DNA from: Rhodosorus marinus CCMP1338
Taxonomy: Eukaryota > Plantae > Rhodophyta
Reading direction: 5' to 3'
Length of the DNA: 64,000 nucleotides
Assembly (NCBI GenBank): GCA_029953675.1
Contig: JAMWBK010000013.1
Location: forward strand, 310,001-374,000
Part shown: positions 6,653 through 58,345 of the stretch, in pieces
Numbering within the stretch: the first letter of the stretch is position 1
Layout of the letters: each line of letters starts with the position of its first letter
Program-made: the position numbers and the translations under genes
Notes under the pieces: model-generated
Database searches by the model: none
What the model saw: only the letters and a program-made list of their open reading frames with translations
What the model was told of the DNA's origin: nothing

Positions 6653-8098
6653 TCAAGGCCTGCCGCCTGTCATGATCATATCGAAAGGCGTGTATTCGTC
6701 GTCCTCAGCATCGTCCTCGTCATAAACATTGCCAAGTCGTTCTTCTACATCGGCATCCGCCAACGGCGAAACCGCTTTGAAACTCTTCAGGGCTGGGAAA
6801 GCACCCTCCTTCGAGGCTGGCTTCTGCGCACCGAGTAGACTCATCGGCGATTTCTTGCGCCGGGATATGAATTCTGCGTATTCATCCACCCCCTGGTCGC
6901 ATTCAGCACTCTGGGAGCTCCGTCCACTTTCTCTATCGGAACCTTTGGTCATAACAGCTCCTGTAGTCTGTCTTTGGCCGGTCATTGAGTCGCTGTCCCT
7001 CCCCTGGGGTTCTCTACCACGACTAGAGGCTTGTACCCCTGAGGGACTACCGGAAGGTCCATCCAAAGATGGGGTTGTCTGCTTTACGTTCAGGTCGTTC
7101 AGAGAGCTCTGCCTAGAGACTGACTGTGATGACCGGGCCTTCATCCTCAGAGAAGCTTCTCGGGACAGTGAGGCAAGGTCACCGGACTCGCCCCTCGCAG
7201 AGGGGTTCACCGGAATGTTCAACCAATCCCAGTGAGGATTGCTCACAGAAACCGTTCGCCTTTCCGGTTGGAAGGAATCAACAATCTCCGCGCCGTCTGC
7301 ACTAAGGCGTCTGATCCCGATGACCCCCATGGAGGTGCCATGGACCTTGCTTCCACTACCCACAAACATATGGGTGTCATGTGTGCCCCCATGACTGGCG
7401 GGTCCGTCATGAAGACCTTCAAGGTCCCCAACATCCACGTCTTTTGCATCGGAATCACTCCGAGCGGCGACAGAGGAAACCGGCGAAGGGGCTGAAAGGA
7501 GCTCGGTGAGCGGAAGAGCAAATCCTTCGTGGGGGTCTACCCTATCCCTTAAATCCGCTGGCTGAGCAGGGTCGTCGTCACTGAGAGACGAAGATGCCTT
7601 GCCTGGACGATTCACGGGTGATAGGACCCAGTTCCAAACCCTCTTCCCTTTCATCTCTTCCAACCCTGGATCAGGAGTCATCGGTTGATGCGCCTGAGGC
7701 ATGTGTTCAGCAGACACACTTGAAGTGCGGCTGTGCCCACTCTGGACATTGCTCAGTGATCTTCGACCCACAAGGGGCTGGCGAAAGACCTTTCTCTTGT
7801 CACCACGTGGGGTATGACCTTCAGCACACAGATCAACCTCCGTGGCACTCATATCCCGAGCCGGCGACGCGGAATCCTTCTCGAATCTGCACAAACTCGT
7901 TGCGCGCAGGTCAGGCTCCCGTTTACTCGATCCTTTCTTCAACCAGAACAACCGCCTCCCGCCTCCCCATTTCTCCACAGCGCCTTGCGGTTCCTTCCCT
8001 TCAGCCCCGCTTTTTCCCTTCGAAAGCACGCCTCGAAGCTTCATAGAGAACGGCTTCCGGCTACTACCGTCCTGCCCTACATCATCGTCCGCCATCAT
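6653..8098 (-). CDS. Intronless 481-aa Ser/Arg/Gly-rich, probably disordered hypothetical protein
   Basis: Long ORF with ATG start, flanked by an AT-rich promoter (8.1-8.8 kb); no recognisable domain. Confidence 0.7.
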   Translation of the reverse strand: MMADDDVGQDGSSRKPFSMKLRGVLSKGKSGAEGKEPQGAVEKWGGGRRLFWLKKGSSKREPDLRATSLCRFEKDSASPARDMSATEVDLCAEGHTPRGDKRKVFRQPLVGRRSLSNVQSGHSRTSSVSAEHMPQAHQPMTPDPGLEEMKGKRVWNWVLSPVNRPGKASSSLSDDDPAQPADLRDRVDPHEGFALPLTELLSAPSPVSSVAARSDSDAKDVDVGDLEGLHDGPASHGGTHDTHMFVGSGSKVHGTSMGVIGIRRLSADGAEIVDSFQPERRTVSVSNPHWDWLNIPVNPSARGESGDLASLSREASLRMKARSSQSVSRQSSLNDLNVKQTTPSLDGPSGSPSGVQASSRGREPQGRDSDSMTGQRQTTGAVMTKGSDRESGRSSQSAECDQGVDEYAEFISRRKKSPMSLLGAQKPASKEGAFPALKSFKAVSPLADADVEERLGNVYDEDDAEDDEYTPFDMIMTGGRP

Positions 8099-10976
8099 CC
8101 GAAATCACCCCTCGTTCCTCCTCCCTTCCAAACCTACAAAATAACCCTCACTTGTTCCATCAACATACACCCATCCATTTCAATACTGAACGTAACCATT
8201 AACCTCTCTTCACTCTCTCTCCTTCCATCAGTTCCCATTTTCAACCCCTTTCATCACCCCCCTTACCCCCTATATAACAACCCTCCCTCCTCCTCCTTCC
8301 CTACCAGAGCCAACTCTTCTCCAACACTCTTCTCCATATTCACTTTTTTTTCAAAACAAGTCCTCTATCAGCTCAAGACAAAAGACTCCACTAAACAAAA
8401 GCTTTCAAATCAGATACAGAGGATTTCATTCTTTCCTTTACCCCCCTCCCACCCCTTTTTTACGGTCATCCGTACTATCTACACTGATTTTAAAAAATAA
8501 TTTAGACTGTTTGGAATCATTCTCAGATTGATAAGATAGGGGGTTGCTTTGTTCGCAATAAGTTGGTCCCTCCACCCTAGAACTAGAAATACAATAAAAG
8601 CGGAGTTGGAAGGTCACTATTGTGGTCATATAATTTTTATTAATTATACTATTTTATTGTTAGTTTTCATACTTTTTAGATATACCTGAGATGATACGAT
8701 AAATACTACAAAACTCAATATTCAATCATATTGTATTGTTACCTCGATTAAGTTTTTATAAATTGTAAAAACGAAATCATCTATATATTTACTTGTTAAT
8801 AAAATATACCATTCCGTTCCATATTCAATCAAAATATTTCCGTCCTCCTATATTTATAGTTTTTCGCTGGTGATCGAGATAGAGCTTGAAAATAAACAAA
8901 GAAAAACAGATTTCCACTTCGCGCGCGGGTGATCTTTCGGTTTATCAGCTCTCCGGTTACCCCCTCCCAGGAGAGAAAAGAAAAACAGCAAATCAAGAAA
9001 GTCAATCGTTTCTTTTTAAAATTAAAATATTCAAAGTCTTGTTCGTGCTGAGAAGAAACCTTCCCACGCCCACCCCCCAGGAGGGCTGTTGTCATGGATT
9101 GGAGATTGGGAGTCACCCTGAAGTTCTTCGATAATAAAAAACAATAATAAATTCTCGTATGTACAATCTATTTATAGTGTTCGCCTGGTGAGGATTGTCA
9201 TAAAAAGTCCTCAAAAGGTTGTCAGACGCGTCCCCAAAATCAAGTCCAGGTAATATGGAATAAAAGAAGAAAGTACGGGTATGGTTAGTTAAAAAGCTTT
9301 ATAAAACCTTTCTAATTTGGTGTTTATCGGACACATCGTGTCAAATATGTTCTTTAACATATTGCGAAATGTATTTTTTATTTAATAGTACGGTACTAAT
9401 GATTTTTACAACAAATTGTATCGGACGAAACATAACCACGTTATTATTGGGATGCGCGTAAGGTGCTGACTCTGGTCGTGATCATTGGAGGGAGCGAGCC
9501 ATAGCCGACCTTCCACCTATTAGTGAAAAAAATCACTTGCGACAACGTCATATCCCAGATTCTCAAAGAGTACAACCAACAACTAGCTCAGACTCAGGCC
9601 GCTGAGCGAGCTAAGTTCGTGTCTGATGCCTTGCCATGAGGTCTGGAGCACCGATTTTCACGTTACAGTTCGATCTACCAGTTCATGCTGCCCTGTTGAG
9701 ATAGATGGTGTTGATCGAATTATTAGACCCACTAACTGTGCAAGGCTGGGACAGGTTACGTTAGCTCACGCGCAGGTGGATACCTACCAGATCCAATGTC
9801 CCAATGGAGCATATAGCGGACATTATTGGAGCATCTGCACAGTATAGCTAACTTCGATCAGCAGCCTAGTATCATGGATTCCGATTTTCCGATTCCGCCA
9901 ATGTTCGACCTTGTGAAGCACCGGGCCTCGCTGTGACAGTGCGGAGTATCTACTGTTCAAGGTATGTTCGCCATATACGTCTTCATTATCGTTTACTCAG
10001 AGACAGTAGCCCTGAGCGGATGAAGGCTAGGCCGAACCGAGATGTGTCAGTATTTTAAAGACACTCGACTCATCCACACAGTAAACTGGGGTCTCCCTCT
10101 ACGTCCTGTTGTTTAAACACCAGCAGCGTTCACGAGCGCACCAATCGGCTCTCCTTGCAGATCACTCGATCGAGTTTTCTGTTGTGCTTTATTAGTAGAA
10201 CTAACGACCCCGGATGGGTGTCGTAGGAGGGGGAACAGGGAGCCACAGTCACCCCAGCTTAACTACTAAAAACTACTGGCACTCTTGCAACTAGGAAGTG
10301 CAACCCAAGAGTTGCCTCGCCGCAGCGTGCAGTTCATCGCAGCAAGGGCTTTGCTCAAGACGGTAAGCCACGAGCCCAGATGCTGTTGTAACGTGCGAAT
10401 GCTTCGTTGGTCCCGAACAAGCACTTTTCTGTTCGTTGCTGTTGCGCGTGGGGAAGCGAGATGTCCCCCCGCGCTATCGTGAATTGAGAATTGTGAGAGC
10501 AAAACTGAAGTTGGGGAAAACTTATAAAGTGTTTTGGAATGCTTTGAAGGTATATTGGATGAATGGATTTACCCCCTGTGTAGAGCTCATGCTCAATCCA
10601 TGTCTGAATTGTCTATTTTTTTAAAAAGAAAAGAGTTTATTCATCTTTCGGTCGAATCCGCATTTTGGTTTCTGGGTGAAGGTGGAATGGTCTCCACCCA
10701 CCCTGCAGCAGACACTGAGAATTATCTGGTCAATGAGTGGGATCGGTTCCCATTCTTCCCCGTGGACAGCCCAGGCAGACGGGCTATGATTTTTTTACAT
10801 CGGCCCCTTCTTAGGAACCGGAGACCAAGTTAGCTACCATGTCCTCCACAAGCTCTTTCGTTCACTATCGTTGGATTCATCCTATTAAGGGGCAGTGAAC
10901 GTCTGTTTAAAATCGCCAGCGATACTTTTTTCATCGACTCCGCTCGAATTTTGCTGTACAACCTGGCTGTCTTCCT

Positions 10977-12712: not shown

Positions 12713-13672
12713 TCAGTTTTCGTTTTGGAGGACGGTTTGCAGGTTGTGCACGATGGCGTTTAGGGCCTTGACAGCGGCCGAGTCGCGTGCCTCTTCGAAT
12801 GGGTTCTTGCCTTTGTCCACAATTGCGCTTAGTTTAGGGTCAAGAGGAACCCTTCCGAGGAATCTGACACCCATTTCTGTACACATTGCCTGCGCGCCGC
12901 CGGTTGAGGGGGGGAATATGTTCACGCAGTTCTCGCAACTGGGGCACACGTAGCCGCTCATGTTCTCCACAACGCCGATGATTGGAGTGTTTGCCATTCT
13001 GCAGAAGTTTATCTCCTTCCTGACGTCTAGCAGCGATACTTCTTGGGGTGTTGTGACAATCACTGCACCATCTATGTTGCACCCTTTCAGCATCTGTAAG
13101 AGGGAAATGTGCTCATCTGACGTCCCGGGCGGAGTATCAAAAATTAAATAGTCTAGCTCCCCCCAGTCGGTATCCTTCAGGAATTGCTTGATTAGCGATG
13201 TCTTCCTGACGCCCCGCCACGCCACCGCGTTGTCCCTTCCGGGGAGCAGAAAAGCAACAGACATAACCGAGAGGTTGTCGTTCACGGCAACAGGTTGCCA
13301 TCCTGAATTGGACTGCCGTACTTCCTCTCCCTGCACAGAAAGCATATGCGGGATTGAAGGGCCGCAGATGTCCACGTCCAGGAGGCCAGTCTCTGGCATA
13401 TCTTCCTGCGCAGACAGCGCGAGCGAAAGAAACGACGCAAACGTGCTCTTCCCAACTCCTCCCTTTCCAGAAAGCACAAGTATCTTATTCTTCACCCTAC
13501 TAGAGCTTAACCGGTTCCTAATAATCTCCAAATCAGGATCCTCCTTCGCCGCCTCACCAGACGCACACGCCGTTTGACTAGGACATCCAGCACAGCTGTC
13601 ACTCTTCCCAGCATGCTCAGAACCCGTCCCAGGGCACCCTTCCGGTGCATGCTCCGGAACAATATCACCCAT
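12713..13672 (-). CDS. NBP35: Cytosolic Fe-S cluster assembly factor NBP35/NUBP1 (intronless)
   Basis: N-terminal [19 protein letters not shown] cluster motif, P-loop [40 protein letters not shown]. Confidence 0.95.
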
Positions 13673-15864: not shown

Positions 15865-18721
15865 ATGTCAAGCGGGGGTCATCACCATAGAACGTCTCTT
15901 GGTCAGCGCAATAAGGCTCATAAGGTTTCTGGGTAAGGCTCCGCCTGTTCTGGCTGCTTCTCTGTCGAAGCCCGGGGGTCTGATATCTGCAGATATCTGC
16001 TTGCTTTGAAGTTCTGGGAGCTAACTGGCTTCGGTTTTCTTTTTGTTTATTATTTGTTTTCTGAAGTGGCCATTCCAGCTCGAGGGAGCTGCGGAAGAAA
16101 GCCGGCGGAAGGGTTGGGCTCAAGCAAAGTGACCTCGCAGCGGGAAAGAAGGCACGCCATGCTTCTGCATTATCGCGGCGTGATGCGGAGCGCGGAGCGA
16201 AGAGAAAGGCGCTCATGGAAAGTGCTCGCCTCGTGAAAGATTCCTCGAAGAACGACCCTCCGCTCTCGGTAGTTTTTGTGCCTGTCACGAAAAGCGCAAA
16301 CGCAGCTAGCGCCAGAAGGACGTTCGCAAAGTACTGCCATGAGATCGGTTCGTGCCTCTGCAGAATGCTCCTTCAGTTTAATCCCCGTGAGGCCTAAATT
16401 TGTGCATTCCTGACCGACTTCTTTGTCCTCGTGCTGTCTCTCCGAACTGCAGAGACTGATGACGCAGCGGCTGAGCACGGTTCGGAACTTTACGGTTATC
16501 AAGTGGTGAACGTACCGAAAACACTATCCCACGGTACTCTGCAAAGCGCAATGCTCCAGTCCGTGGATAGGGTGGAAGGTGAGGGAGAAACTGAGTTTTT
16601 ACGGGTGCTCATGAGCGCTACCAAAGGAGCAGACTTGATCGTGTTCGTATTCGCTTCAGAGGAAGATCCTGAGGATGCTGACAGTCAGACATTCCGAATA
16701 CTTCGGATTCAAGGTAAGGTTGCATTCTCGGGTAGGTAGGTCTATTCACGGATTATCAGGGCAGCTGAGCATACCTCCAACAATCCAAAAATTCATTCCC
16801 ACTTCTTTGGTCTAGGAGTTCCAACGGCCCTGTCCGTGTACTACAATGCTAATGACGAAGAAGCGGAAAATCCTGGCGTCGAGATGGAGACTGTAGGCTC
16901 AAAGTCCAAGAACAAGCAGCGGAATCGCGCGGAAAAGCGTGAGAAGGAAATGAAGGTCGTTCGCGGCAAAATTTTGGAGAAGGAGAGTATGGGGAGCGAC
17001 GAGGTCGCGCTTAGGCCTCACAAAATTTTTCTTTCAAACCTCTCTAAACCAACCGACCACGAGATTCTAGAGACGAGGAACGCTGTTCGACTGATTCTAT
17101 CCCACCAGAGAAGATCGTTGACCTGGAGAGCGGGCCGCTCATACTTGTATGCAGAGCAGATTGGAGATGTGGTCGCGGATAACGGCTCGGTGCGCATCTC
17201 CGGGTACGTGCGCGGCTCGCCCGTGTCCGCAAATTATCTTGTACATATTGGAGGTTATGGCACGTATGCCGTTCGATCGATCAGCTCCTCTGGTCATCCG
17301 GGACGCACAAATAAACGGGCGCAGCCAATGAGCCTGGAGGATAAAGTCATAAGTGTGAGAGATGAGACTGTTGCAGACGATCCAAGAAGCGACGCTGAAG
17401 TTGATCCGCTCGTGGGAGAGCAGACTTGGCCAGATCTGGAAGAGGGAGATCACAAAGGGGAAAATCGCGTTGTCGTTGAACGTAGAAAACAGCCGAGGGG
17501 ATGGTCAGAGTACCAGGCGGCGTGGATTGCAGAAGATGAGGATTACGAGGTGGACTCGGATGTGGTCACTGATGGAGATGTCGTGGAAGAAAATGATCCC
17601 GTTGAGGATGACGATATGGAGCTTGAGCGAGATAGAGAAGGACCTCATGAGGTGGATGCCTCAGAGAACGGAGGAGACGATAATATGGACATAGGCGAGG
17701 ATCTTCCGGTCGATGCAGAGGAGGTCCAGCGGTCCCGTGAGCACGATGAGAACGAGCGGTTTCCTGACGAGGTCGATGTACCTCTTGATAGACCTGCACG
17801 GGAGAGGTTTGCGAGGTACCGAGGGCTGAAATCTTTTCGAACCTCGCCATGGGACACAAAGGAGCTTCTCCCGAGGGAATATGCGAGTGTGCATCAGTAT
17901 GCAGACTTTAGGCATTTGAAAAAACGAATCCGAGAGTCGGAGAGGAGCGAACCGTGGACCCATGCTAAGGTTGGAGAGTACGCAACTCTGGTGTTGGAAA
18001 AGTTTGGCCAGGAGAACCTCGATCGCATGCGAACCGAAAAAGGACCAATCATTGTCTACTTCATGCACAAATTTGAGAACAAGCGCACAGTTCTGCACGT
18101 TGGATTGCATGGTAACGAGGGTCACGACGTCAAGGGGAAGGACGAGCTTGTCTTCCAGACAGGGTTTGTACAGTTCAAAGCGAGACCAGTATTTTCGGAG
18201 GTCAACGCAAACTGTGAAAAACACAAGGTGGAACGATTCCTACATCCTGGCAGGTTTTGTGCAGCGACCGTGTACGGCCCTTCAATTTTCACCCCCGCGC
18301 CGGCGATTGCTTTCAAACCCGATGGGCAAATCGTTGGCACAGGCTCGGTCTTGAGCGTCGACCCAGACCGGATAGTGCTGAAACGGATTGTTCTCACGGG
18401 GTATCCGTTCAGGATACACAAGAAAAGGGTAAATTGCAGGCTAGGAGTTTTCAACTTGTTTTACATTGTTTGTAAGCCTCTGAGGTGTTCGCTGGTTTCG
18501 TGCTCTAGGCCGTGGTCAGATTCATGTTCTTCAACCCGGAGGATATCCGATGGTTTAAGCCTGTGGAACTTTTCACAAAGCTCGGCCGCTCGGGACACAT
18601 AGTGGAGCCGTTGGGAACGCACGGCTATATGAAGTGCATTTTTGACGGCCCGATATTTCATCACGACACAGTATGTATGTACCTGTACAAGAGGGTGTAC
18701 CCTCGATTATCTGACGCTTAA
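15865..18721 (+). CDS. TSR1: Pre-rRNA processing protein TSR1, multi-exon
   Basis: [113 protein letters not shown]. Confidence 0.95.
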
Positions 18722-30787: not shown

Positions 30788-32756
30788 ATGGCGCCATCTA
30801 GGAGAGTTTCGGTGCAATCAAACGGCGTGACTCGTCTCGTCTATAGATCTGTTCTGTTGGAGAAGAGGGTTTTTGGGACGTCGATTAGGCGGTTTTGTAC
30901 CGGTTCAGTTTCTGATGGGGAGGATGGTGAAGAGTGGACAACGAGCTCCGGAAAAGCCCTCCTTCAGACGCCGCATGGATTCATTGAAAAGTCAGAGATC
31001 ACGGAGGAAATTACGAAGTCTTTCTTGGGCTATGCGATGAGTGTAGTGAAGGGCAGGGCCATACCTGATGTAAGGGATGGGTTAAAGCCGGTTCATCGGA
31101 GAATCCTCTACGCCTTGCACAAGACGAGATCTGGAACAGTGTCCCCATACAGAAAGAGTGCTCGCATAGTTGGTGAGGTTATGGGCAAGTACCATCCCCA
31201 TGGCGATCTGTCTGTCTACGACGCCCTGGCGCTAATGGCGCAACCGTTTGCGAACAATATTCCACTGATCGATGGTCACGGAAACTTTGGAAGCATAGAC
31301 GGAGAAGCCCCGGCAGCGATGCGGTATACTGAGTGCAGGTAAACTCCGCATGCAACTTCCGCTTTCGATGACAGTAATGTACCTTTCGATGAACTGATCG
31401 CGGTGAATGCCTATGCAGACTCTCGAAATTGAGCACTGAAGCGGTTTTGCCGGACATTGAGAGTAAAACTGTCGATTTTGTTCCAAATTTTGACGCAACT
31501 GTGGAGGAGCCGACGGTGATCCCTACGAGAATACCAAATCTCCTTGTTTCCGGATGCCATGGTATCGGTGTAGGAATCGTTACTATGGTCCCTCCGTTCA
31601 ATCTCCTGGAGATCCTAAACGCACTTAGATTGCTGCTGGATAACCCCTCCTGCAAAACCGAAGAGCTCATGAAGATCGTTCCCGCTCCAGATTTTCCAAC
31701 TGGAGGACTGGTAGTTGGCCAGTCAGGCATACAGTCTGTCTTCAAGACTGGCAAAGGACGCTTCATTATTCGATCAAGAATGCATACTGAGAACATCAAG
31801 CGGAAGTCTGGAAAAACGCGGACGGCTATCGTTGTAACAGAGATTCCCTATCACGTGCAGAAGCCCAAGCTGATGATGAGCATCGCGAAGCTCGCCAAGT
31901 CGAACAAGATTGAAGGCGTTGTGCACCTCCGAGATGAATCCGACCTGTCTGGAGTAAGGATTGTCGTTGAGCTAAAAGCAACGGCAGACCCTCAAGCAGT
32001 TTGGAGAACTCTGCTGAAGAAAACGAGCTTGAGGAGTTCCTTCAAAGCAAATATCTTAGCCCTCGACCACGAGGGAAAGGTTCCGAAGCTCCACAACGTC
32101 AGGCAATGCCTTGAAAAGTTCATCGAGTTTCGAAAGCAGGTCATCGTGAGGAGGTCTGTTTTTCTTTTGACAAACAGGCGACAGCGCCGCCTGGGAGCAC
32201 ATTGTGCGGTTGATCTGATCGTCCTTTTCAACTTTCATCATCAGGACCAAGTTTTGGCTTGAGAAAGCTGAGCGACGAAAACACATCGTGGAAGGATTCC
32301 TGATCGTCTTTACAAACTTTGATGAAGCGGTTGAAGTCATCACTCGTGCCAGTACGGGAGAAGATGTAGAGAAACAGCTAATGGATCCTAACGGTTCCTT
32401 CCGAATGAGCAAGGTCAGAACGATTGAGATAGATCCATCACCCGTCGCCATGTTTAACTTTGCTCATTTAATGTTTTCTCTTCGTTTGCCGACGACAGAA
32501 GCAAGCAGATGCTGCTCTGACCATGTTGCTGAGGAGCATAACCAGGATGGACGCTAAAGCCTTCTCCGAGGAAATCGAACAGTTGGATAGGAACATAACA
32601 GAGCTGCAAGAAAGTCTAGCAAACGATCAAAAGATTGTGAATATTATGAAGGAAGAATTCGCTGAAGTAGCGAAATGCGTAGGGAGCAAAGGGAAACGGA
32701 AGAGTGAGGTTGCGGTTCCGCTACCTGAGGAGGACGAAGTTCTCGCAAAATCGTAG
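30788..32756 (+). CDS. gyrA: DNA gyrase subunit A (organelle-targeted), breakage-reunion domain only; exons about 30788-31338, 31419-32153, 32245-32412, 32499-32756
   Basis: [44 protein letters not shown], catalytic [36 protein letters not shown]; TAG at 32754-32756. Confidence 0.9.
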
Positions 32757-37838: not shown

Positions 37839-38273
37839 CGCATCCCTACAACCTTTTCCAACAGGGAAATGACTATCTTACACAATCAGACATATTATCC
37901 TCATTAAAGTCAGTCCAAAAAAAAACAAGCAACCGCCATCCGAACCCAAAATCGCGACCCAGAGATCCGAAGACCTCACCCTCAAAATCCCCGTCCACCA
38001 ATCCAGCAATCCAGGCACATCCAAAGGCTTCTCCCAAAACCAAACCTTCTACATAGAACTCGGCACTTATCCTTCCTTCCTGAACAGAAGAACAATCTTG
38101 CACTGCACGATCGCTTTTATCAACCCTTATCTCCTGCTAGTCTTGCTCAGAAAACTACTCTTTCCCACCAATCCCACCATCAATACCGATTTGGCTTAAC
38201 ATGCATGGCACGTGGCCCACCTCACTTTTTTTAGGTTAGTCATATCCACGCAATAAAAAAAAAGTCCCATTAC

Positions 38274-38319
38274 GTCCGATTGGGTCCGATTAGGTCCGAT
38301 AGAAGTCGAACAGTCCGAT
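38274..38319. repeat. GTCCGAT motif array with about 10-bp period
   Basis: GTCCGAT at 38274, 38284, 38294, 38313 (variant GTCGAA at 38305); another copy at 38457. Confidence 0.8.
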
Positions 38320-39701
38320 ATAAGTAAAATAGACCTGTATTACGTAATAATTACGTCATTTATTTCCTCTAAGGTGTCTTATATATATTTATCAGACTTG
38401 AATTCAGAATATTAGTAGAGTTTATGTCCATGAAGGTCCTATACCGATCGATTGACGTCCGATATTCCTCAATCAATGACGTATATTGATCGAATATCAA
38501 TCTTCTTCCTTGGCGACATTGTGTCTGTGCGACTACTTAAGAGTTTTTAAGGCCCTCTGAATCCATTCATTCTGAAAAAAATAAAATTGTATAGAACAGC
38601 CTGTCCTCTTCAGAAGTAATCATGATTCGATATATGATAGTGACAGCTTGTCATTCCGCGAAGTAATCATAATTCAATATTCGGATGCGGAGATGATTGA
38701 TTACTAGACGTATATTGATTGACTGTCAGAAGTTTAATCGGACTAGCAACTGAACATGTATTTTAGAAGTAATTAAATCAGACATCATCTACTTTTCTAC
38801 TTTTATTCAGTGGTCTATTCCGGAAAACTTTATAGGACAGTTTATGACTCCTCTACTTCTATCTATTGGTCAATCACAATAATATATTATTTAAATATTT
38901 TAAACCTATCTTCGCTTTTACTACGTTTATACAATAGATGCGTTTCTGTTTTGATGAATTATTCAAACAAGATGCGAATAATTTACGTATTATTTGATTT
39001 TTTGATCCTGGCTGGGGGTACTCGAAAAGTGGGAATTCGTGTAGGGGGTTGTTGGACCAGTAGTACGTTTGAAGCGCATTGGCGAGTATGGGTAGCTTTG
39101 GCTCTCGGATTTTGAGTGGCGAACAAAAGTCTCGGCATTGGTCGATGGGCAGTGCCTACTATGTTTGAGATGAGTGAAGCAGCTCTTGGAGCTCCAATGA
39201 ACCTTGATTTGGGTTTGACACCCGTGAGGTTCTCGGACTCAGAATTTGCTAACACTATACTTTGCGTTCGCCAAAGTGTGGAGTTCGTTACTCCCCAAAG
39301 CGGAACAGACTCCCTAAAATCTTCATTACCATATATTTTCAAAATACACACTTTACTGAGTTCAAATTTTCTTCAATGAAGGCGAATTCTATATACATAG
39401 TTTCCGAACAGCATGATGGACTTTACGGTCAATTTTCTATTGGATAAACTTTTTTCTGGAGTTAATAGATTATGACAGGTTTCGGTGTTGTTTGTAACAT
39501 CCATTGGCTAATTTTCTATCTCTCCTCGCAGCCACTTTTTTCACTTGGTCTATAACTTGGTCCAATTCATACACAACGGTTTTCATTTCAAATCAATATT
39601 ACTAATTCGACACAAGTATCCGCGGGCAGATCGGCTTTCCGGCTCGGGCTGTCTGGAAAATTATTTCTTTACATTCTGTAATTATTCTACAGCCTCACGA
39701 A

Positions 39702-39774
39702 GCCGGCCTAGCTCAGTCGGTAGAGCGCAAGGCTCTTAACCTTGTGGTCGTGGGTTCGAGCCCCACGGTCGGTG
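39702..39774 (+). tRNA. tRNA-Lys (anticodon CTT)
   Basis: Cloverleaf: acceptor GCCGGCC/GGTCGGT, D-loop AGCTCAGTCGGTAGAGC, anticodon arm CAAGG-CT-CTT-AA-CCTTG, T-loop GGTTCGAGCCC. Confidence 0.97.
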
Positions 39775-39783
39775 CTTCAGATT

Positions 39784-39795
39784 CTTTTTTTTTTT
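39784..39795 (+). terminator. Pol III oligo-dT terminator of tRNA-Lys
   Basis: T run about 10 nt downstream of the tRNA 3' end. Confidence 0.75.
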
Positions 39796-40179
39796 AGTTC
39801 GTTGCTGTTGTTCTCGCTTGCTGCTAAATCTGTTTCGGCAACGACGCTACTGCCAAGCTCAGTGGGAGGCAACGCGAATATACCGTTTGAGGACTCGAAG
39901 GTGGAATGTCCTGGGCAATGTTTTGGCTACATGCAGACGAGGAACCAAGTGGAAGAGGTGACCCTGATGCACCAGCAAGCCAGTAGCAGCCCTCGGAAGA
40001 AATATCGAATTTGGTAGCCAGGTTGATGTCCATGCGTCCCCGCTTCCACGCATCAGGTCGTCAGCCTTGCCCCAAAGCTTGCGCATAGCTCCGGTCCTTT
40101 CAGTCTTTTTTTGGCTTCATCTGAAGCTGTTGATGATGAACTACGAACTCCTGCTCTCCATCAGGAGGTCTAACAGTTC

Positions 40180-51450: not shown

Positions 51451-52286
51451 CATAGATTGTATGCTTTCCTCTGCATCGCTTGTCCACTGGTAGGAAACGA
51501 GACTGGAGTCCTGTCGAAGTTCTAACGAAATGCAATGAATTGTTACTACAGGGTAGCGTCGTCGGCATCGAGGACTCTGAAGCGATGGTTGCAAAGGAGT
51601 CCTAACCACTCCGAGCACGTCGTACCCCGAAAATGTCCGTGACTAGCGTAATCCTGGTCTCTGCGAGATTCTACAAACAAACCATGCTTCCAAATACGTT
51701 GAAGTACAAGCGGCTCCGACAAGTCACCACCTTCCCAGCCCGGCGGCTCAGTTAACCTTGCTCAACCTCCGACCATCCACACCCAAATCATACCTGCTAA
51801 ACACAACTCAACAAACACAAACCTCACCTCACATCGCTCGCAAAAACCTTCCGAATCAGATCTCCACTGTCAACAACATCAAATCACAGCTATCAGATCT
51901 ATCACATCCAACCGCTCCACTTCCCCCCGCCCACTCACATACCCAACCCATCACTTTCCATTACCTTTCTCGCTTATCTACTATGGAACCTAATTTTTTT
52001 TATCGAACTAGCGACGAGTATCAACGAACATTGGCCTCTCCACGCAATAGTCTTTTTTGGCCAAGCAGATGATATGATACGCAGCACATGCATTTCGGGG
52101 GAGCATCACTGAGGTGCGGAGAACATTGGAGGTGAAGATTCCCCTCTTTGGCCAAGGAATTTAAGGAGTTAAGGAGGGTAGAGGTTAAACTTATCCTCTC
52201 CGATGATAGCAGACGCGATATCCTATCGTGAGGTACGGAGAGAGAGAGGGAGCGGGGAGATTTCTTTTGTTAGTTGGGGGCCAAAG

Positions 52287-53600
52287 ATGAGGACGATGTT
52301 ACTTTTTAGTGTAATTTTGGAGTTTTTTGGGTGTTTGGTTTTGGTTTCTGGATTTGAGACGAGTGATCTTCCAGGACTATATAAGTTGGTATCTTGTGAG
52401 TCTGGAGCTGGGTGTCCGGAGGAGCTAAGAATTGAAAAGTTTTATAACGTGATTGCCAGAGAGGCTGGTGAGGTTGGTATAGGAGACTCCCACCATTTTC
52501 CTGGATTTGGCTGTTCTGGAAGCGGCGATTTGTTTGGAGGAATTGAGTTTGCGAGCACTGGTAAGTGAGCAGAGCCCTGGCCTGTTGCTTGCTTTTTTTG
52601 TTTTGTTGTTCTTGACTTGTGAGCTGATGGGCTGGGCTTGGAATACCGCAATCACTTCTTGTGTTCAGAGGATGGAGGAAAAAGTGAGGATACCGGGTTC
52701 GTGGTTGGAGGTGAACCGTTCCAGGATACAGGTGTCTTTTCCTTGGAAGAATTGAATTGCGAGCGGTGGGAGGTTATCGAAATCTCAATCCTTTCGAATG
52801 GCAACACCACGGCCGTGTTCAGTGAGAGAGACGATGGAAACTCCCTGGTGGAGATAAAGGGAAGTTATCAACTCACCGAGGAACCGGCTTGTTTCTCAAC
52901 CAGTTCTGAGGTCCGAGTACGCCGCGACGACGGGTAAGGATTCAATAGGAGCCTTTTAACTCAGGAACGATCAGGAAAATCGTCTGCCGCGCGATTCTCG
53001 TGAGCTCCTTACCTAAGGAAACTTTGTCTTCTCCTTTTTCTAGGAGCCTGACCAGAATGCCCCTGGGAGAAGTCCAAGTCGGCGATTTCGTAGAGTCTCT
53101 AGATTGGAGAGGTGAACGGTCCTTCTCCAAAGTATATTTAATTCAGCACGCTGGTTCGGCTTTGTACTCGGATGTAATTGACGTCCATGTTATAACCGTT
53201 GATGGTAATCCGACTCGTACTCCAAAGCTGCGACAGAGTTCAGAAACTCAAATATTGGACTTGTGCATATTTTCGGATTGTTTTAGGAGGAAACGGTAGA
53301 CTGCAGGTAACCGGGGATCACATACTTCTTTCTGAGGGAATGAAACCAGTGAGAGCTTCGGACTTGAAGCTAGGAGATCAGCTACTGTATCTGAGCGGGG
53401 ACGATTCCAGAGCTGTAGAAGCTTCGGTGGTGGAGTTAAAAAGGGCTCGTAGTGCCGTCGCCAACGTCAATACGTTTAACAACCGGCTTGTCGTCAATGG
53501 CTTCGCCGCAACTACACATTCTGTTCCGTTCCGTCTTTCTGCGAGACTTTTAACGCCATGGCTAGACGTTCTGGTACGACCGCATAACTTGACCTTTTGA
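52287..53600 (+). CDS. Secreted protein with C-terminal hedgehog-type Hint (Hog) autoprocessing domain; exons 52287-52560, 52669-52933, 53044-about 53206, 53287-53600
   Basis: Signal peptide MRTMLLFSVILEFFGCLVLVSG; Hint block A PA|CFSTSSEV (Cys at 52890), VQVGDFV, block B LQVTGDH, ASDLKLGD, block F ANVNTFNNRLVVNGFAAT. Confidence 0.85.
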
Positions 53601-54118
53601 TATCGCGCCCAGCTTAGGGTGCTCACAGATACTGCTCTCTTTTCCCTCGCCGATTCAGGCATCTCCTTTTAAGCTTTTGTCAACGCTTGGCACTGATCGA
53701 CTCGTAAAGGCCGTTGACACATCGCTAAACAAGCTTTTTCGAAAGTAGTAGAAGTGTCCGTCTGGGTGGGAGTTTGTCGGGTTCAAGCCCTCCAGTTCTC
53801 GGTCTTCGAATAGGTATGTGGTCTTCAAAGAGTTTTGTATAAAATGTCATCCGCATGCTCCATATCGGTTGGTTCGGCTCGTGAAGATGACTAATAAGAA
53901 AGGGTCCTTCTATTCTTTAACAAATGGTAAAAACGGAGCTCCATCTCCGGGGGGAGATACAACAAAGAGTCAACAAAGAAATAATATCCCAATCCACGAG
54001 CGGACAATTAGCAGTTGTTTGTGTATCCCCCCTCCCCCCCCACCATTAGGTCACTCCGCTCCAGAGGTGGGTCGGACTATCTAGATAATCCGCTGCGGGA
54101 GTTGTACGTTTGCATATT

Positions 54119-57100
54119 CTACAACTGCTGTTGTTTCACCAGAGAAGAATACACTCCCCCATGGCTCGTCATCAGCTCGTGGTGTGTGCCCTTCTCCACG
54201 ATCTTCCCATCAGATACTACCGCGATCGTGTCCGCGTGCTGAATAGTCGACAGTCGGTGCGCAATAACGATCGTCGTCCGACCAGATGCCGCCTTGTCCA
54301 ATGCCTTCTGTACAATCTTCTCCGATTCGCTGTCGAGAGCACTCGTCGCCTCATCGAGTAGAAGGATCTTCGGGTTCCGCACTACCGCTCGAGCAATCGC
54401 AATACGCTGCCTCTGTCCACCGCTCAGCTGCCCACCGTGTGCCCCGACCTGCGTGTCGTAACCCTTCGGCAACTTCATCACAAACTTGTGTGCATTTGCA
54501 AGCTTCGCCGCATTCACGATATCCTCCTCCGTCGCTACTGATCCCTCCGCCTTGCGCATACCGTGAGCGATGTTCTCCCGAACCGTCGTCGAGAAAAGCT
54601 CAGGCTCTTGCGTCACAAATCCAATGTGGTCCCGCATCGACGCAAGATTCCAGTGTTTCAGTGGCTCCCCATCGATCTTCACAGTCCCAGAATACGGGTC
54701 ATAGAACCTCTCAGCAAGCGTCACAACCGTACTCTTTCCTGATCCGCTGGGTCCCACCAGAGCAAGCATCTTCCCCTTCTCCGCCTTCACTTGCAATCCT
54801 TTCAGAACCGTCATTTCAGGCCTCGCCGGGTACCTGAACGATACGTTCTTAAGCTCCACTTCTCCCTGGCATTTCTCCATCACCTCGCCGCTCTCGTCGA
54901 ACGGGTCGATTGGCGACTCCTTGTCTATTAAACGGAAGACCCTGGTGGCCGCGTAGCCGGCATCAGCAGCGTCTGGCATAAGCGCCGCCACTTGTCCAAG
55001 AGTCATAGCTCCGAACAGCAGCGCAGTTAGCGCCTTCAGCATTCCAGCAAAGTCGCACCATTCCCAGCTTATCAGAAGCGACCCAAACCAGAAAGACAGA
55101 CCCCAAATACCAAACATGCAAAACTGCGTAAACCCGAACGCTGATCCAGTGATCAACGCCTTGCGCTTCCCAGTTTGCGCCGGTATTTCAAGTTCATGGT
55201 CATAGTCTGCGAGGAACTTTTCTCCCACTCCAAGCGAAGTCACAGTTTGGATGCTGTCTACCGTGTTCGTGGCAATCGCGTTCGCGTTAGCAAACAGCTT
55301 TCCAAGTTCCCCTGAAAGTCCACCCATCATCTTCATTTGAATCATCCCACCAATAGCGAAAAGTGGAACCGTGAGTAGAACAACCAGCGCAAGCGCCCAA
55401 CACGCACTGAACGCGATTGCGATTGCTGATACCATCGTTGCTCCCATCATGACAAAGTTTCCGAGGCGTTCCCCAGTAGCTCCCTTCACCTTCGCAGCCT
55501 CAGCTCCGAGACGAGTAGTAAGAATTCCCACACTATTCTCCCGCATATCGAAGAAACCAACGTCCTGACGAATGATCGCCTTGAATGTCATCTTGCGCAG
55601 TCGATTCGTCAGTCGCTCTCCAGTCAACCCGAAGAAGAACAACTGAGCCAGGTTGGACCACAGTGAGACAAAACCAACGAGTACGAAAATGAGACTCCAG
55701 AAACGAGCCTCTGCTTGATCGTTAGTCTCTACGAGTACCACAAGCATTTCCGACATCAGCAGAGAGAATATAGGCCAGATCACTCCCGAAATACACGCTC
55801 CCACGATTCCACCAACGAAGTAGGGCCACTCCGGTTCGTTCAGTGCCAGAGCTCTTGTTACGACACCCTTGTCCACAACTTTCTCCGCCTGCGCCTCCGT
55901 CTCCAGGTCGGTTTCACTCAACCCTGTTGCGCTCTTCGTCGTCTTGTGAACGGATTTCCCCTCCGTCTCGCTCTTTTGAGTAGCGCGTCGTGAGGTTGAG
56001 AATTTAGATTGGTCAAGTTCACCTCCTTCATCTTCTTCGTCGTCTGCGATCTGTTGCAATTTCACGAGGTTGGAATAGATGCCGTGTTCCTTCGCAAACA
56101 ACTCGTCATGAGTCCCGAGCTCTTTAACGGCCCCGTTCTCGAAAACCGCTATTTTGTCGGCATTCTTAATCGTCGACAGGCGGTGGGCAATCAGCACCAC
56201 TGTCCTCCCTTCCTGCGCCTTGTCGATCGCTTCTTGTACCACTCGTTCAGACGCCGTGTCCAGTGCACTCGTAGCCTCGTCCAGAAGCAATATCTTCGGG
56301 TTTCTCACAAGCGCTCGCGCAATCGCAACACGTTGTTTTTGTCCACCGGACAGCTGCGCACCTCGGTCCCCAATCACAGTGTCATACCCTTCTGGTAGCT
56401 TGCTGATGAACTCGTGAGCATTTGCCAACTTTGCAGCCGCAATAACCTCCTCCAGCGACGGTTCCATTCTTCTCACTTCTCGACCTTCCTCAGTGTCCAC
56501 CACATCAATCCTTCCTCCAAGTCCAATGTTGTCCCGGATTGACATCGCGAACAGCGTCGGCATCTGAGATACAAGCCCGATCTGTCCCCTCAGCCACTGC
56601 ACGTTCATTTCGCTCAGCTCCACCCCGTCCAGAGTCACCGATCCCCCCTTCGGATCGTAGAACCTCTCCAACAGTTGCATCGTTGTTGACTTTCCACATC
56701 CACTCTCTCCCACCAGCGCCACCGTTGTTCCCGCCTCAATCGTCAGGTTCAATCCGTTCAGAACAAGCCTATCAGGCCTCGAGTGGTACGTGAACATCAC
56801 GTCCTTCAGTTCGATGTTTCCCTGCACCTCCATTCCGGCCTTGCCTTCTACCCCGAACGCATCAATTTTGCTTTGCCTTTCGATCACTTCGAAAACCCTG
56901 GGCGCTGCCCCTCGTGCCTCTGTAATTGCGTTCATTGCTGGAGCTCCTTGTCCGAGAGCCATCGCTCCGATAATTACGGAAAAGAATACCGTAACCACGT
57001 CCGCTGCGCTCATAACCTCATCCCGCACAAGTTTGTTCCCATACCAGAACGCCAGTCCGTACGAGCAAAGAATTACGAACATCGTTAAGCCCATTCCTAA

Positions 57101-58345
57101 GCCCATCCAGAACGATTTCCGAATTCCTGAAGATATCGCAGCTGCACAAAGGTAAATGAACAGGAGTCCACGTTAAATACAGCCCTCGGCGTATGTGTTT
57201 CCCGAACCAGAAAAAAATTGAATCCGCAGCGAGCTCGCCTGCAGGCTTACCTTTCAGCGCTTCTCCGTAGCGCTCAATCTCCGATGCTTCCAGGCCGTAC
57301 GAGGCGACAATCTTTATCATCGAAAACGACTCGTGCGCAATTGCTCCCGCCTTCGCATACGCCGTCTGTCCCTCGCCTACTGCGTCCGCTGACATCTTCG
57401 CGAACAAGTACCCACTAGCAGCCAGAAGCGGTGTCACGGCGAGGATGACCAGTGTCAATTGCCAACCGTAGACGAATCCAATGATGAATCCCACAAGGAA
57501 CATCGTCATGAACTGTGCAGCAGTGGACACCTTGTCTCCAATCCCATCTTCCACTTTCTGGATGTCTCCAGATACACGTTGAGCTAGCTCCGCAGAGTCA
57601 ACCTCATCGTACCAGCCCATCTCCTGTGAAAGAAGAGAACGCATGTACAAGTTTCGCATTCTCCTTGCCTGCTGTTGACTCGTCCACATCATAAAATAGA
57701 CTTGGCAAACTCCAGCGACAAGAGCACCAAGCCCCAAATAAACGAATATCAGAGCATTGTTCCTGATGGATTCGAGGGCTTCGTCCGGATTGTCGAGCGA
57801 TTCCTCACTACCAAAATCCTCCAAGATATTTCCGAAGATGATGGTGAACATGGGTAGGAGTGCTCCTTGGCATGCACCGGCGAAGATTCCAATAAGTATA
57901 AAGAGCCTCTCCCGCCTATTTGAATACGTGAAAAGCTTCGCAAGCGAAACCGCTGGAGGCTTTTCGACCTTCTTCCTCTTCCGTGTGAAAAGTCCAAAGC
58001 ACACCTTGACTTCCTCATACTCAACCTCTTCATCTTCAAGCAGCTTTGCCTCTGGGTCCTCAAATATCACTTCCTCATCCTGTTCATTCGGCCACATACA
58101 GGATAGAGTCAATACCGGACAGGCGGAAGACCGATTGAGCCCTTCAGACTAGCGGGAACCACTTACCTCCTCATCCGAATCATACGAGGTTTTCACCTGG
58201 GATTCATGAAATTCAAAAACGAAGAGTCAGATCTATGCCCCCACGTTGGCAGAGGTTCAGCGCAGTATCCTTTGGAAAGCCAGCCTACCGTTGGAAGGTG
58301 CTTCGAATCCCCCAACTCCGCGACCTCGACCTCCGTCCCCGACAT
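54119..58345 (-). CDS. ABCB1: Full-length ABCB/MDR (P-glycoprotein-like) transporter, TMD-NBD-TMD-NBD
   Basis: Two Walker A (GESGCGKST, GPSGSGKST), two signatures (LSGGQKQRVAIARA, LSGGQRQRIAIARA), two LLLDEATSALD; short 5' exons from ATG 58345. Confidence 0.95.

Follow-up and report, generated by a model that had tools for sequence, protein, structure and literature searches.

In a 64,000-nucleotide stretch of the genome of Rhodosorus marinus strain CCMP1338 (GenBank assembly GCA_029953675.1, described in PMC10250338; contig JAMWBK010000013.1, positions 310,001 to 374,000 of the forward strand; hereafter the window, whose own numbering is used throughout), the gene NDN08_000089 encodes a protein in which a predicted signal peptide and an orphan passenger domain are followed by a hedgehog-class Hint (Hog) module and a short, putatively helical tail. 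The explanation that best accommodates these features, and that we consider probable though well short of secure, is that the gene product is a secreted Hog-type precursor which would cleave itself and leave its N-terminal domain either esterified to a membrane lipid or free. The window is eukaryotic nuclear DNA, and the Hog gene is a nuclear gene of this unicellular red alga. What is new here is a Hog protein from the class Stylonematophyceae with an orphan passenger, the class of protein itself having been known since 2008.

The coding region was rebuilt from the sequence by joining open reading frame (ORF) fragments through four canonical introns. It occupies 52287..53748 on the + strand, from an ATG at 52287 to a TAG at 53746-53748, and comprises five exons (52287-52560, 52669-52933, 53044-53204, 53287-53573 and 53659-53748), giving a spliced coding sequence of 1077 nt and 358 aa. 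The five-exon product (P0001) is identical to NCBI KAJ8900789.1, 'hypothetical protein NDN08_000089 [Rhodosorus marinus]', which UniRef names 'Hint domain-containing protein'. All four introns are GT-AG: intron 1 (52561-52668, 108 nt) interrupts the passenger domain, introns 2 (52934-53043, 110 nt) and 3 (53205-53286, 82 nt) lie within the Hint-coding region, and intron 4 (53574-53658, 85 nt) interrupts the tail and holds an in-frame stop at 53598-53600. An initial annotation of this locus, made from the sequence alone, listed features that are all present on the + strand (the start, the N-terminus, PA/CF, TGDH and ANVNTFNNRLVVNG). Its gene model located introns 1-3 but read through the fourth, counting four exons where there should be five, and it closed the gene at 53600 on what is an intronic stop. 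The short tail that it described, '...DVLVRPHNLTF', was thus mis-modelled; the real tail has 45 residues, a predicted two-helix organisation and a conserved segment, motif K, discussed below.

Comparison with a sister strain, R. marinus CCMP769 (transcriptome MMETSP0011; ~83% nucleotide and 82% protein identity to the window gene), bears on the start codon. An in-frame ATG at 52203 was considered as the start and rejected: annotation places the start at 52287, the CCMP769 transcript is homologous only from ~52260 onward, and that orthologous transcript carries an in-frame stop five codons upstream of the ATG, which favours 52287. Starting at 52203, 84 nt upstream, would put 28 residues, MIADAISYREVRRERGSGEISFVSWGPK, before the signal peptide. 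The interval 52203-52286 is probably 5' untranslated region (UTR), as it is not conserved in the sister-strain transcript, which has an in-frame stop there.

The CCMP769 transcripts also support the splicing pattern. Among them, P0100 is a full-length, fully spliced orthologue of 359 aa, collinear with the window protein at 82% identity and without indels; the contig L001 lacks introns 1 and 2 precisely at the predicted sites, and the fragment P0025 shows the splice of intron 4. Across these sister-strain transcripts all introns are seen to be spliced. The Ala165/Cys166 junction lies wholly within exon 2, so the passenger domain is joined to the start of the Hint domain without the need of any splicing, and the two parts do share one mRNA, as the initial annotation required. 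The ratio of nonsynonymous to synonymous substitution rates (dN/dS, Nei-Gojobori, CCMP1338 versus CCMP769) was estimated at 0.34 over the N-domain and at 0.21 over the stretch of the Hint domain that had been sequenced, with dS of 0.4-0.5, which indicates that both halves evolve as protein-coding sequence under purifying selection. Taken together, these results leave us almost certain that the locus encodes a real, expressed protein. A gene-model artefact, in which the N-domain and the Hint domain would belong to different genes or the ORFs would be non-coding, has a negligible probability: nothing speaks for it beyond the fact that the introns had to be guessed in the initial annotation, and it is already refuted by the splicing of L001, the coding pattern of substitution and the collinear P0100 from an independent transcriptome, to which the single-exon junction can be added.

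Some CCMP769 forms retain introns, namely intron 1 in P0004, intron 3 in P0002 and intron 4 in P0099. The last of these reproduces the ending '...DVLVRP.NLTF' and loses motif K. Such forms may simply reflect unspliced RNA that entered the assembly, or may represent a regulated isoform without the adduct region; retention of intron 4 in the window strain would stop the protein at 53600, with 337 aa and a truncated tail. Separately, positions 1-90 of L001 are made up of simple sequence, (GA)n and (AT)n repeats with runs of T and of G, and do not align to the window; this 5' end is perhaps a 5' UTR of low complexity, perhaps an artefact of assembly.

The Hint fold is assigned to residues 166-313 (52890..53525, + strand, with introns 2 and 3 inside) on the basis of PF01079, AlphaFold and Foldseek. 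The profile search proposed in the initial annotation, when run, found Pfam PF01079 over residues 163-313 of the 337-aa read-through model (E=1.2e-6, 28.8 bits, against a curated cut-off of 29.7), and the same family appears in the precomputed database annotation of the 358-aa protein. Profile searches gathered 93 to 168 relatives, nearly all with PF01079. The best sequence matches in the PDB are the C-terminal domains of Drosophila Hedgehog (Hh-C), and BLASTP against Drosophila Hh-C (sequence from PMC12054796) gave 28% identity over 180 residues with E=2e-9. AlphaFold, given an alignment of 29 sequences, returned a model with a predicted local distance difference test score (pLDDT) of ~90 across the Hint fold; when this model was compared with the PDB by Foldseek, the top matches were 6TYY (Hh-C D46H, E=3e-9) and 1AT0 (Hh-C17, E=8e-9), with a TM score of 0.83 and a root-mean-square deviation of 2.7 Å. 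In both the sequence and the structure searches, Hh-C ranks ahead of all inteins, and in the structure search also of bacterial intein-like (BIL) domains. On sequence and modelled structure, then, the C-terminal half is assigned to the hedgehog-class (Hog) Hint modules, with a similarity far beyond chance. An intein or BIL reading was considered and rejected: the Hint domain ends in ...NGFAATTHSV without a terminal Asn, and there is no C-extein, only the 45-aa helical tail and then the stop.

Hydropathy, PF01079, BLASTP and Foldseek thus agree with the proposal of the initial annotation that this is a secreted-type precursor with a hedgehog-class module, for which autoprocessing is predicted. 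Its further suggestion of a hedgehog-like signalling system is unsupported, however: no Hedge (HH_signal) domain was found in residues 1-165 by Pfam at E≤1 or among PDB sequences, and a protein without that domain is not a Hedgehog orthologue. The lipid modification that it mentioned as possible finds no support in these data either. The survey for paralogues that it had called for returned no second copy by tblastn in the 64-kb window, and no second R. marinus protein among the matches listed by two word-prefiltered profile searches (120 of 168 listed in the second).

The active site of Hh-C comprises C1, D46, T69, H72 and C143 (PMC12054796), and the residues that would serve the first step are intact in Rhodosorus. 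The predicted autocleavage junction is Ala165/Cys166-Phe167 (PA/CF; 52887..52895, + strand), with Cys166 encoded by the TGT codon at 52890-52892. This C-F pair aligns with C1-F2 of Drosophila Hh-C and is invariant in 54 of the 54 relatives that cover the column. The TxxH motif, counterpart of T69 and H72, is T242-G-D-H245 (codons 53310-53321); it is conserved in CCMP769, and in other relatives its Thr is found in 81 of 83 and its His in 80 of 83.

Two positions depart from Hedgehog. His215 (codon 53147-53149) aligns with Asp46, the Asp general base being absent, and 81 of 83 related Hog domains have His here too; in the PDB sequence search the D46H mutant 6TYY gives the query a higher score than wild-type 1AT0 does. 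Asp46 acts in Hedgehog as the general base that activates the sterol hydroxyl, and a base is needed for the adduct step but not for thioester formation (PMC12054796). D46H Hedgehog still autoprocesses (PMC12054796), so His215 may keep the function despite the differing residue. The second departure lies in motif J, where Thr309-Thr310-His311 (codons 53511-53519) places Thr310 at the Cys143 position in pairwise BLASTP and MAFFT alignments. Cys143 carries a branched thioester intermediate in Hedgehog, proposed in 2025 to be obligatory; none of the complete Hogs of red algae and mosses has the motif J Cys, which is Ser, Thr or Asp in them (Bürglin 2008, PMC2362128).

Downstream of the Hint fold, residues 314-358 (45 aa; 53526..53745, + strand, with intron 4 inside) form a candidate adduct recognition region (ARR) resembling the sterol-recognition region (SRR) of Hedgehog. 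Once the last exon is corrected, the tail has the sequence PFRLSARLLTPWLDVLASPFKLLSTLGTDRLVKAVDTSLNKLFRK and contains the motif K-like sequence W325...L329-A-S-P-F-K-L-L-S-T-L339; within it, PWLDVLASPFKLLSTL aligns by both BLASTP and MAFFT with Drosophila HWGLAPMRLLSTL, the start of the SRR. Motif K straddles the junction of exons 4 and 5, and is therefore encoded only when intron 4 is spliced out. AlphaFold places helices at 316-339 and 343-357 (pLDDT 51-65) in a helix-turn-helix. The Hedgehog SRR is itself a helix-turn-helix, and conserved Trp and Leu residues in its first helix are needed for cholesterolysis by human SHH (PMC7906309). Position and sequence both suggest that the PWLDVLASPFKLLSTL segment corresponds to this first SRR helix, and we identify it with the motif K of Bürglin, which is present in red-algal Hogs (Bürglin 2008, PMC2362128). 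Motif L, the second helix, has no recognisable similarity to Hedgehog, and the long SRR loop is absent.

At the other end of the protein, residues 1-22 (MRTMLLFSVILEFFGCLVLVSG, followed by FE; 52287..52352, + strand) form its sole Kyte-Doolittle hydrophobic stretch, conserved in the orthologue and ending in a small-x-small pattern with predicted cleavage after VSG; their hydropathy suggests a cleavable signal peptide. The passenger domain that follows (residues 23-165, 143 aa; 52353..52889, + strand, interrupted by intron 1) is strongly acidic, with a net charge of -20 (28 Asp+Glu against 8 Lys+Arg), and contains 21 Gly. Between CCMP1338 and CCMP769 it is 76% identical without indels, and its four Cys (37, 43, 76 and 122) and an N-x-T sequon (N137) are conserved. 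Searches of residues 1-165 at E≤1 gave no match in Pfam and none among PDB sequences. Using phmmer against 1.84 billion representative proteins, the passenger domain matched two Rhodosorus transcript products and P0005 (E=1e-4), a 3348-aa bacterial protein of ~30 near-identical repeats. We rejected P0005 as a chance or compositional match because one repeat alone, with the word DTGFVV, was hit, where true homology would match them all. P0199, which appeared to share the N-domain at 82% query coverage, was also discarded: spurious high-scoring segment pairs had been summed, and the Hog half alone aligns. When hhalign compared the passenger domain with the N-regions of the closest Hog proteins, which are rich in Cys, it gave a probability of 0.1%, indicating that the two are unrelated. 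As far as these sequence comparisons reach, the passenger domain is found in Rhodosorus only and belongs to no recognised family, in agreement with the initial annotation, which had recognised none; Pfam, the PDB and proteins from outside Rhodosorus supplied no relative. The structural check suggested at the same time was less productive. AlphaFold was run, with pLDDT of 22-50 for the domain in the full-length alignment and 29 for the domain alone with the two available sequences, and both models are unusable for a fold search; there is a weak hint of three or four beta-strands at residues 125-154.

By homology with Hedgehog autoprocessing we infer that the protein is secreted and cleaved, and likewise what Thr310 does, which adduct forms and what the released domain might be for; the proposed sequence of events is as follows. 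The signal peptide (1-22) would bring the precursor into the endoplasmic reticulum, where the Hint fold, with the help of Thr242 and His245, would convert the Ala165-Cys166 peptide bond into a thioester by an N-to-S acyl shift. The acyl group may then move to Thr310 as an oxyester; this would parallel the branched intermediate on Cys143 and, in inteins, the use of Ser or Thr as the +1 nucleophile. A nucleophile bound by the two-helix region (314-358) and activated by His215 would resolve the intermediate, releasing the acidic, Gly-rich N-domain of 143 aa, presumably disulfide-bonded and probably glycosylated, either esterified through Ala165 to a membrane lipid or free. Self-cleavage at Ala165/Cys166 is, by this analogy, the likely part of the scheme; a sterol or other lipid adduct on the N-domain is plausible but more doubtful. 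Sterol is the leading candidate nucleophile because the conserved part of the tail corresponds to the sterol-recognition helix and because red-algal sterols, at the level of the phylum rather than in R. marinus itself, are predominantly cholesterol (PMC10817344). We consider unlikely, although worth stating, the most specific form of the proposal, in which hedgehog chemistry with a His base and Thr at position 143 would esterify cholesterol or another membrane lipid to an orphan acidic glycoprotein, making it a sterol-anchored ligand of the cell surface or mucilage.

Several observations weigh against the reading of the protein as a secreted, self-cleaving and possibly lipid-modifying Hog precursor. 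The PF01079 score on the truncated model falls 0.9 bit below the curated cut-off, the signal peptide is read from hydropathy as its sole basis, and the residue at -1 is Ala, not Gly. The alignment of motif J is ambiguous, as MAFFT with the protist family makes 'THSV' a four-residue insertion, although neither alignment provides a Cys; and both C143A and C143D Hedgehog are dead in cells (PMC12054796), a position that is Thr in Rhodosorus. The tail has 45 aa against about 70-95 aa for the Hedgehog SRR, and the confidence of its model is just 51-65. A literature search for cholesterolysis and algae gave no assay of any algal Hog domain.

These points shape the alternatives. In the main one, water or a small thiol would resolve the thioester; the N-domain would enter the medium or mucilage soluble and unmodified, and the two helices would serve only folding or membrane association. 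Hint domains without a functional SRR do cleave by hydrolysis or thiolysis, 1AT0 (Hh-C17) being the structure of one such product (PMC7906309); the tail of the Rhodosorus protein is short, its first helix alone resembles the Hedgehog SRR, Cys143 is absent, and the intron 4-retaining P0099 of CCMP769 lacks motif K. Bürglin himself chose the term 'adduct recognition region', sterol transfer being unproven outside Hedgehog (2008, PMC2362128). Set against this, motif K (W...LAxPxxLLSTL) is kept between the alga and Drosophila and between two Rhodosorus strains, which points to a tail whose function is conserved. The general-base position also keeps a base, His215, that hardly varies in the wider clade, and a base there serves the adduct step (PMC12054796). 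We regard release without a lipid as rather unlikely, if a serious contender.

A variant in which the N-domain is transferred to something other than a sterol, be it another lipid, a hydroxyl of a cell-wall or mucilage glycan, or a small metabolite, and is thereby covalently anchored, seems improbable. In its favour, the tail beyond motif K is unlike the Hedgehog SRR, and the D46H swap is reportedly one that widens substrate tolerance. Drosophila Hh-C D46H was deposited as an autoprocessing mutant (6TYY) and is still active (PMC12054796), and the acceptor is not known for any non-Hedgehog Hog protein (PMC2362128); nothing positive, however, points to any given acceptor, and the conserved part of the tail is the part held in common with the Hedgehog sterol-recognition region. 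More improbable still is a catalytically dead Hint domain, in an uncleaved secreted protein where the fold would act as a structural or binding module. Two of the five Hedgehog active-site residues do differ (Asp46 to His, Cys143 to Thr), and C143A and C143D abolish Hedgehog processing (PMC12054796), but D46H is active (PMC12054796), and Ser, Thr or Asp at motif J is the norm in red-algal and moss Hogs (PMC2362128). The first-step residues (Cys1, Thr and His) are, moreover, intact and conserved in two strains and in the wider clade, and the Hint part evolves with a dN/dS of 0.21. Thr, like Ser and Cys, is also an accepted +1 nucleophile in inteins.

The self-cleaving secreted precursor that we favour has precedents. 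Hogs were described from the red algae and mosses Chondrus, Griffithsia, Porphyra, Gracilaria, Physcomitrella and Selaginella (Bürglin 2008, BMC Genomics 9:127, PMC2362128); the initial annotation was right that Hint genes were already known from red algae (Bürglin 2008, PMC2362128), yet the novelty that it implied was overstated, the architecture having been known in red algae since 2008 and the gene being already annotated as Hint domain-containing. Judged by their description, these Hogs resemble the Rhodosorus protein in combining a signal peptide, a lineage-specific N-region without homologues elsewhere, a Hint domain and motifs J and K, and in having Ser, Thr or Asp where Hedgehog has the Cys of motif J (Thr in Rhodosorus). 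They differ in that the 2008 paper includes no Hog from the Stylonematophyceae, the class of Rhodosorus, and in that the N-domain sequence reported here is confined to Rhodosorus. The combination of signal peptide, orphan N-region and Hog has also been described for alveolates and other protists (PMC2362128).

With the Hh-C of Drosophila and vertebrates, the Rhodosorus protein shares the Hint fold, Cys1-Phe2, TxxH, the 'VVN..AA' motif J strand and the first SRR helix, W..LAP.RLLSTL. Unlike Hedgehog, it has no Hedge domain, carries Ala for Gly at -1, His for Asp46 and Thr for Cys143, and has a much shorter SRR-equivalent loop and second helix; its natural His215 state is that of the engineered D46H Hh-C mutant.

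The closest relatives of the Hog half, at 25-32% identity, form a protist clade (P0003 and P0006-P0201), mostly metagenomic or metatranscriptomic (for example L002-L004), with the consensus CF.G...LPH..N...T..H...LVVNGIVASPF..H...NAYYN.HR. Its members likewise have His at Asp46, no Cys at Cys143, a signal peptide, variable N-regions and a hydrophobic or helical tail. The Rhodosorus protein departs from them in 'IQHAGS' versus 'LPH..N' and in 'ATTHSVPF' versus 'ASPF'; its tail is closer to the Hedgehog motif K than the tails of the clade are, and the N-regions are unrelated. Within the protist clade, 'VASPF' puts Pro where Hedgehog has Cys143, the 'NAYYN.HR' tail is conserved, and Hogs are fused to many N-regions, including the ice-binding PF11999 (P0051) and PF11912 (P0067).

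Other lineages couple Hint domains to different passengers. Cyanidiales red algae have Kelch-Hint ('hedgehog protein') fusions in multi-copy subtelomeric families (PMC9812998). These are likewise red-algal proteins with Hint C-terminal to another passenger domain, but their passenger is Kelch (galactose-oxidase-like) and they are multi-copy, whereas the Rhodosorus passenger is an orphan with no paralogue in the window or among the matches listed. The nematode warthog, groundhog and quahog proteins and choanoflagellate Hoglet are similarly secreted, with a Hog coupled to a non-Hedge N-domain, in keeping with the ARR concept; their N-domains are, however, Wart, Ground, Qua and CBD-like, and the nematode Hogs keep a conserved Cys pattern of their own.

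We know of no Hog domain outside animals for which the adduct has been identified, so protein cholesterylation may be either an invention of animals or a reaction inherited from early eukaryotes. The Rhodosorus protein offers a compact test case for this question: it has 358 aa, is apparently single-copy, retains motif K, and comes from a sequenced, culturable alga in a phylum that makes mainly cholesterol. With its natural His for Asp46 and Thr for Cys143, activity or inactivity of the protein would bear directly on the branched-thioester mechanism of 2025. Were sterolation by a His base and Thr at position 143 to prove true, protein sterolation would predate animals and the Cys143 thioester relay would not be needed. 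As a genomic finding the protein is unsurprising; its appeal lies in biochemistry, where it would make a good first subject for asking whether a Hog domain from outside animals can transfer a sterol.

The Hog gene lies among ordinary nuclear genes, and nothing suggests an operon-like or functional linkage to it. Downstream, on the - strand, a full ABC transporter of the ABCB (MDR/P-glycoprotein) type at 54119-58112 has two ABC_membrane and two ABC_tran domains; its coding sequence spans two or more long ORFs and converges on the Hog gene, the two stop codons lying ~370 nt apart. Pfam further identifies a NUBPL/ParA-type iron-sulfur P-loop NTPase (12713-13672, - strand), a Tsr1/BMS1-type ribosome-biogenesis protein (16836-18602, + strand) and a fragment of DNA gyrase/topoisomerase IV subunit A (31429-32262, + strand), presumably organelle-targeted. 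The G+C content is lower (0.41) at 8001-10000 and 38001-40000 than elsewhere in the window, where it ranges from 0.45 to 0.54.

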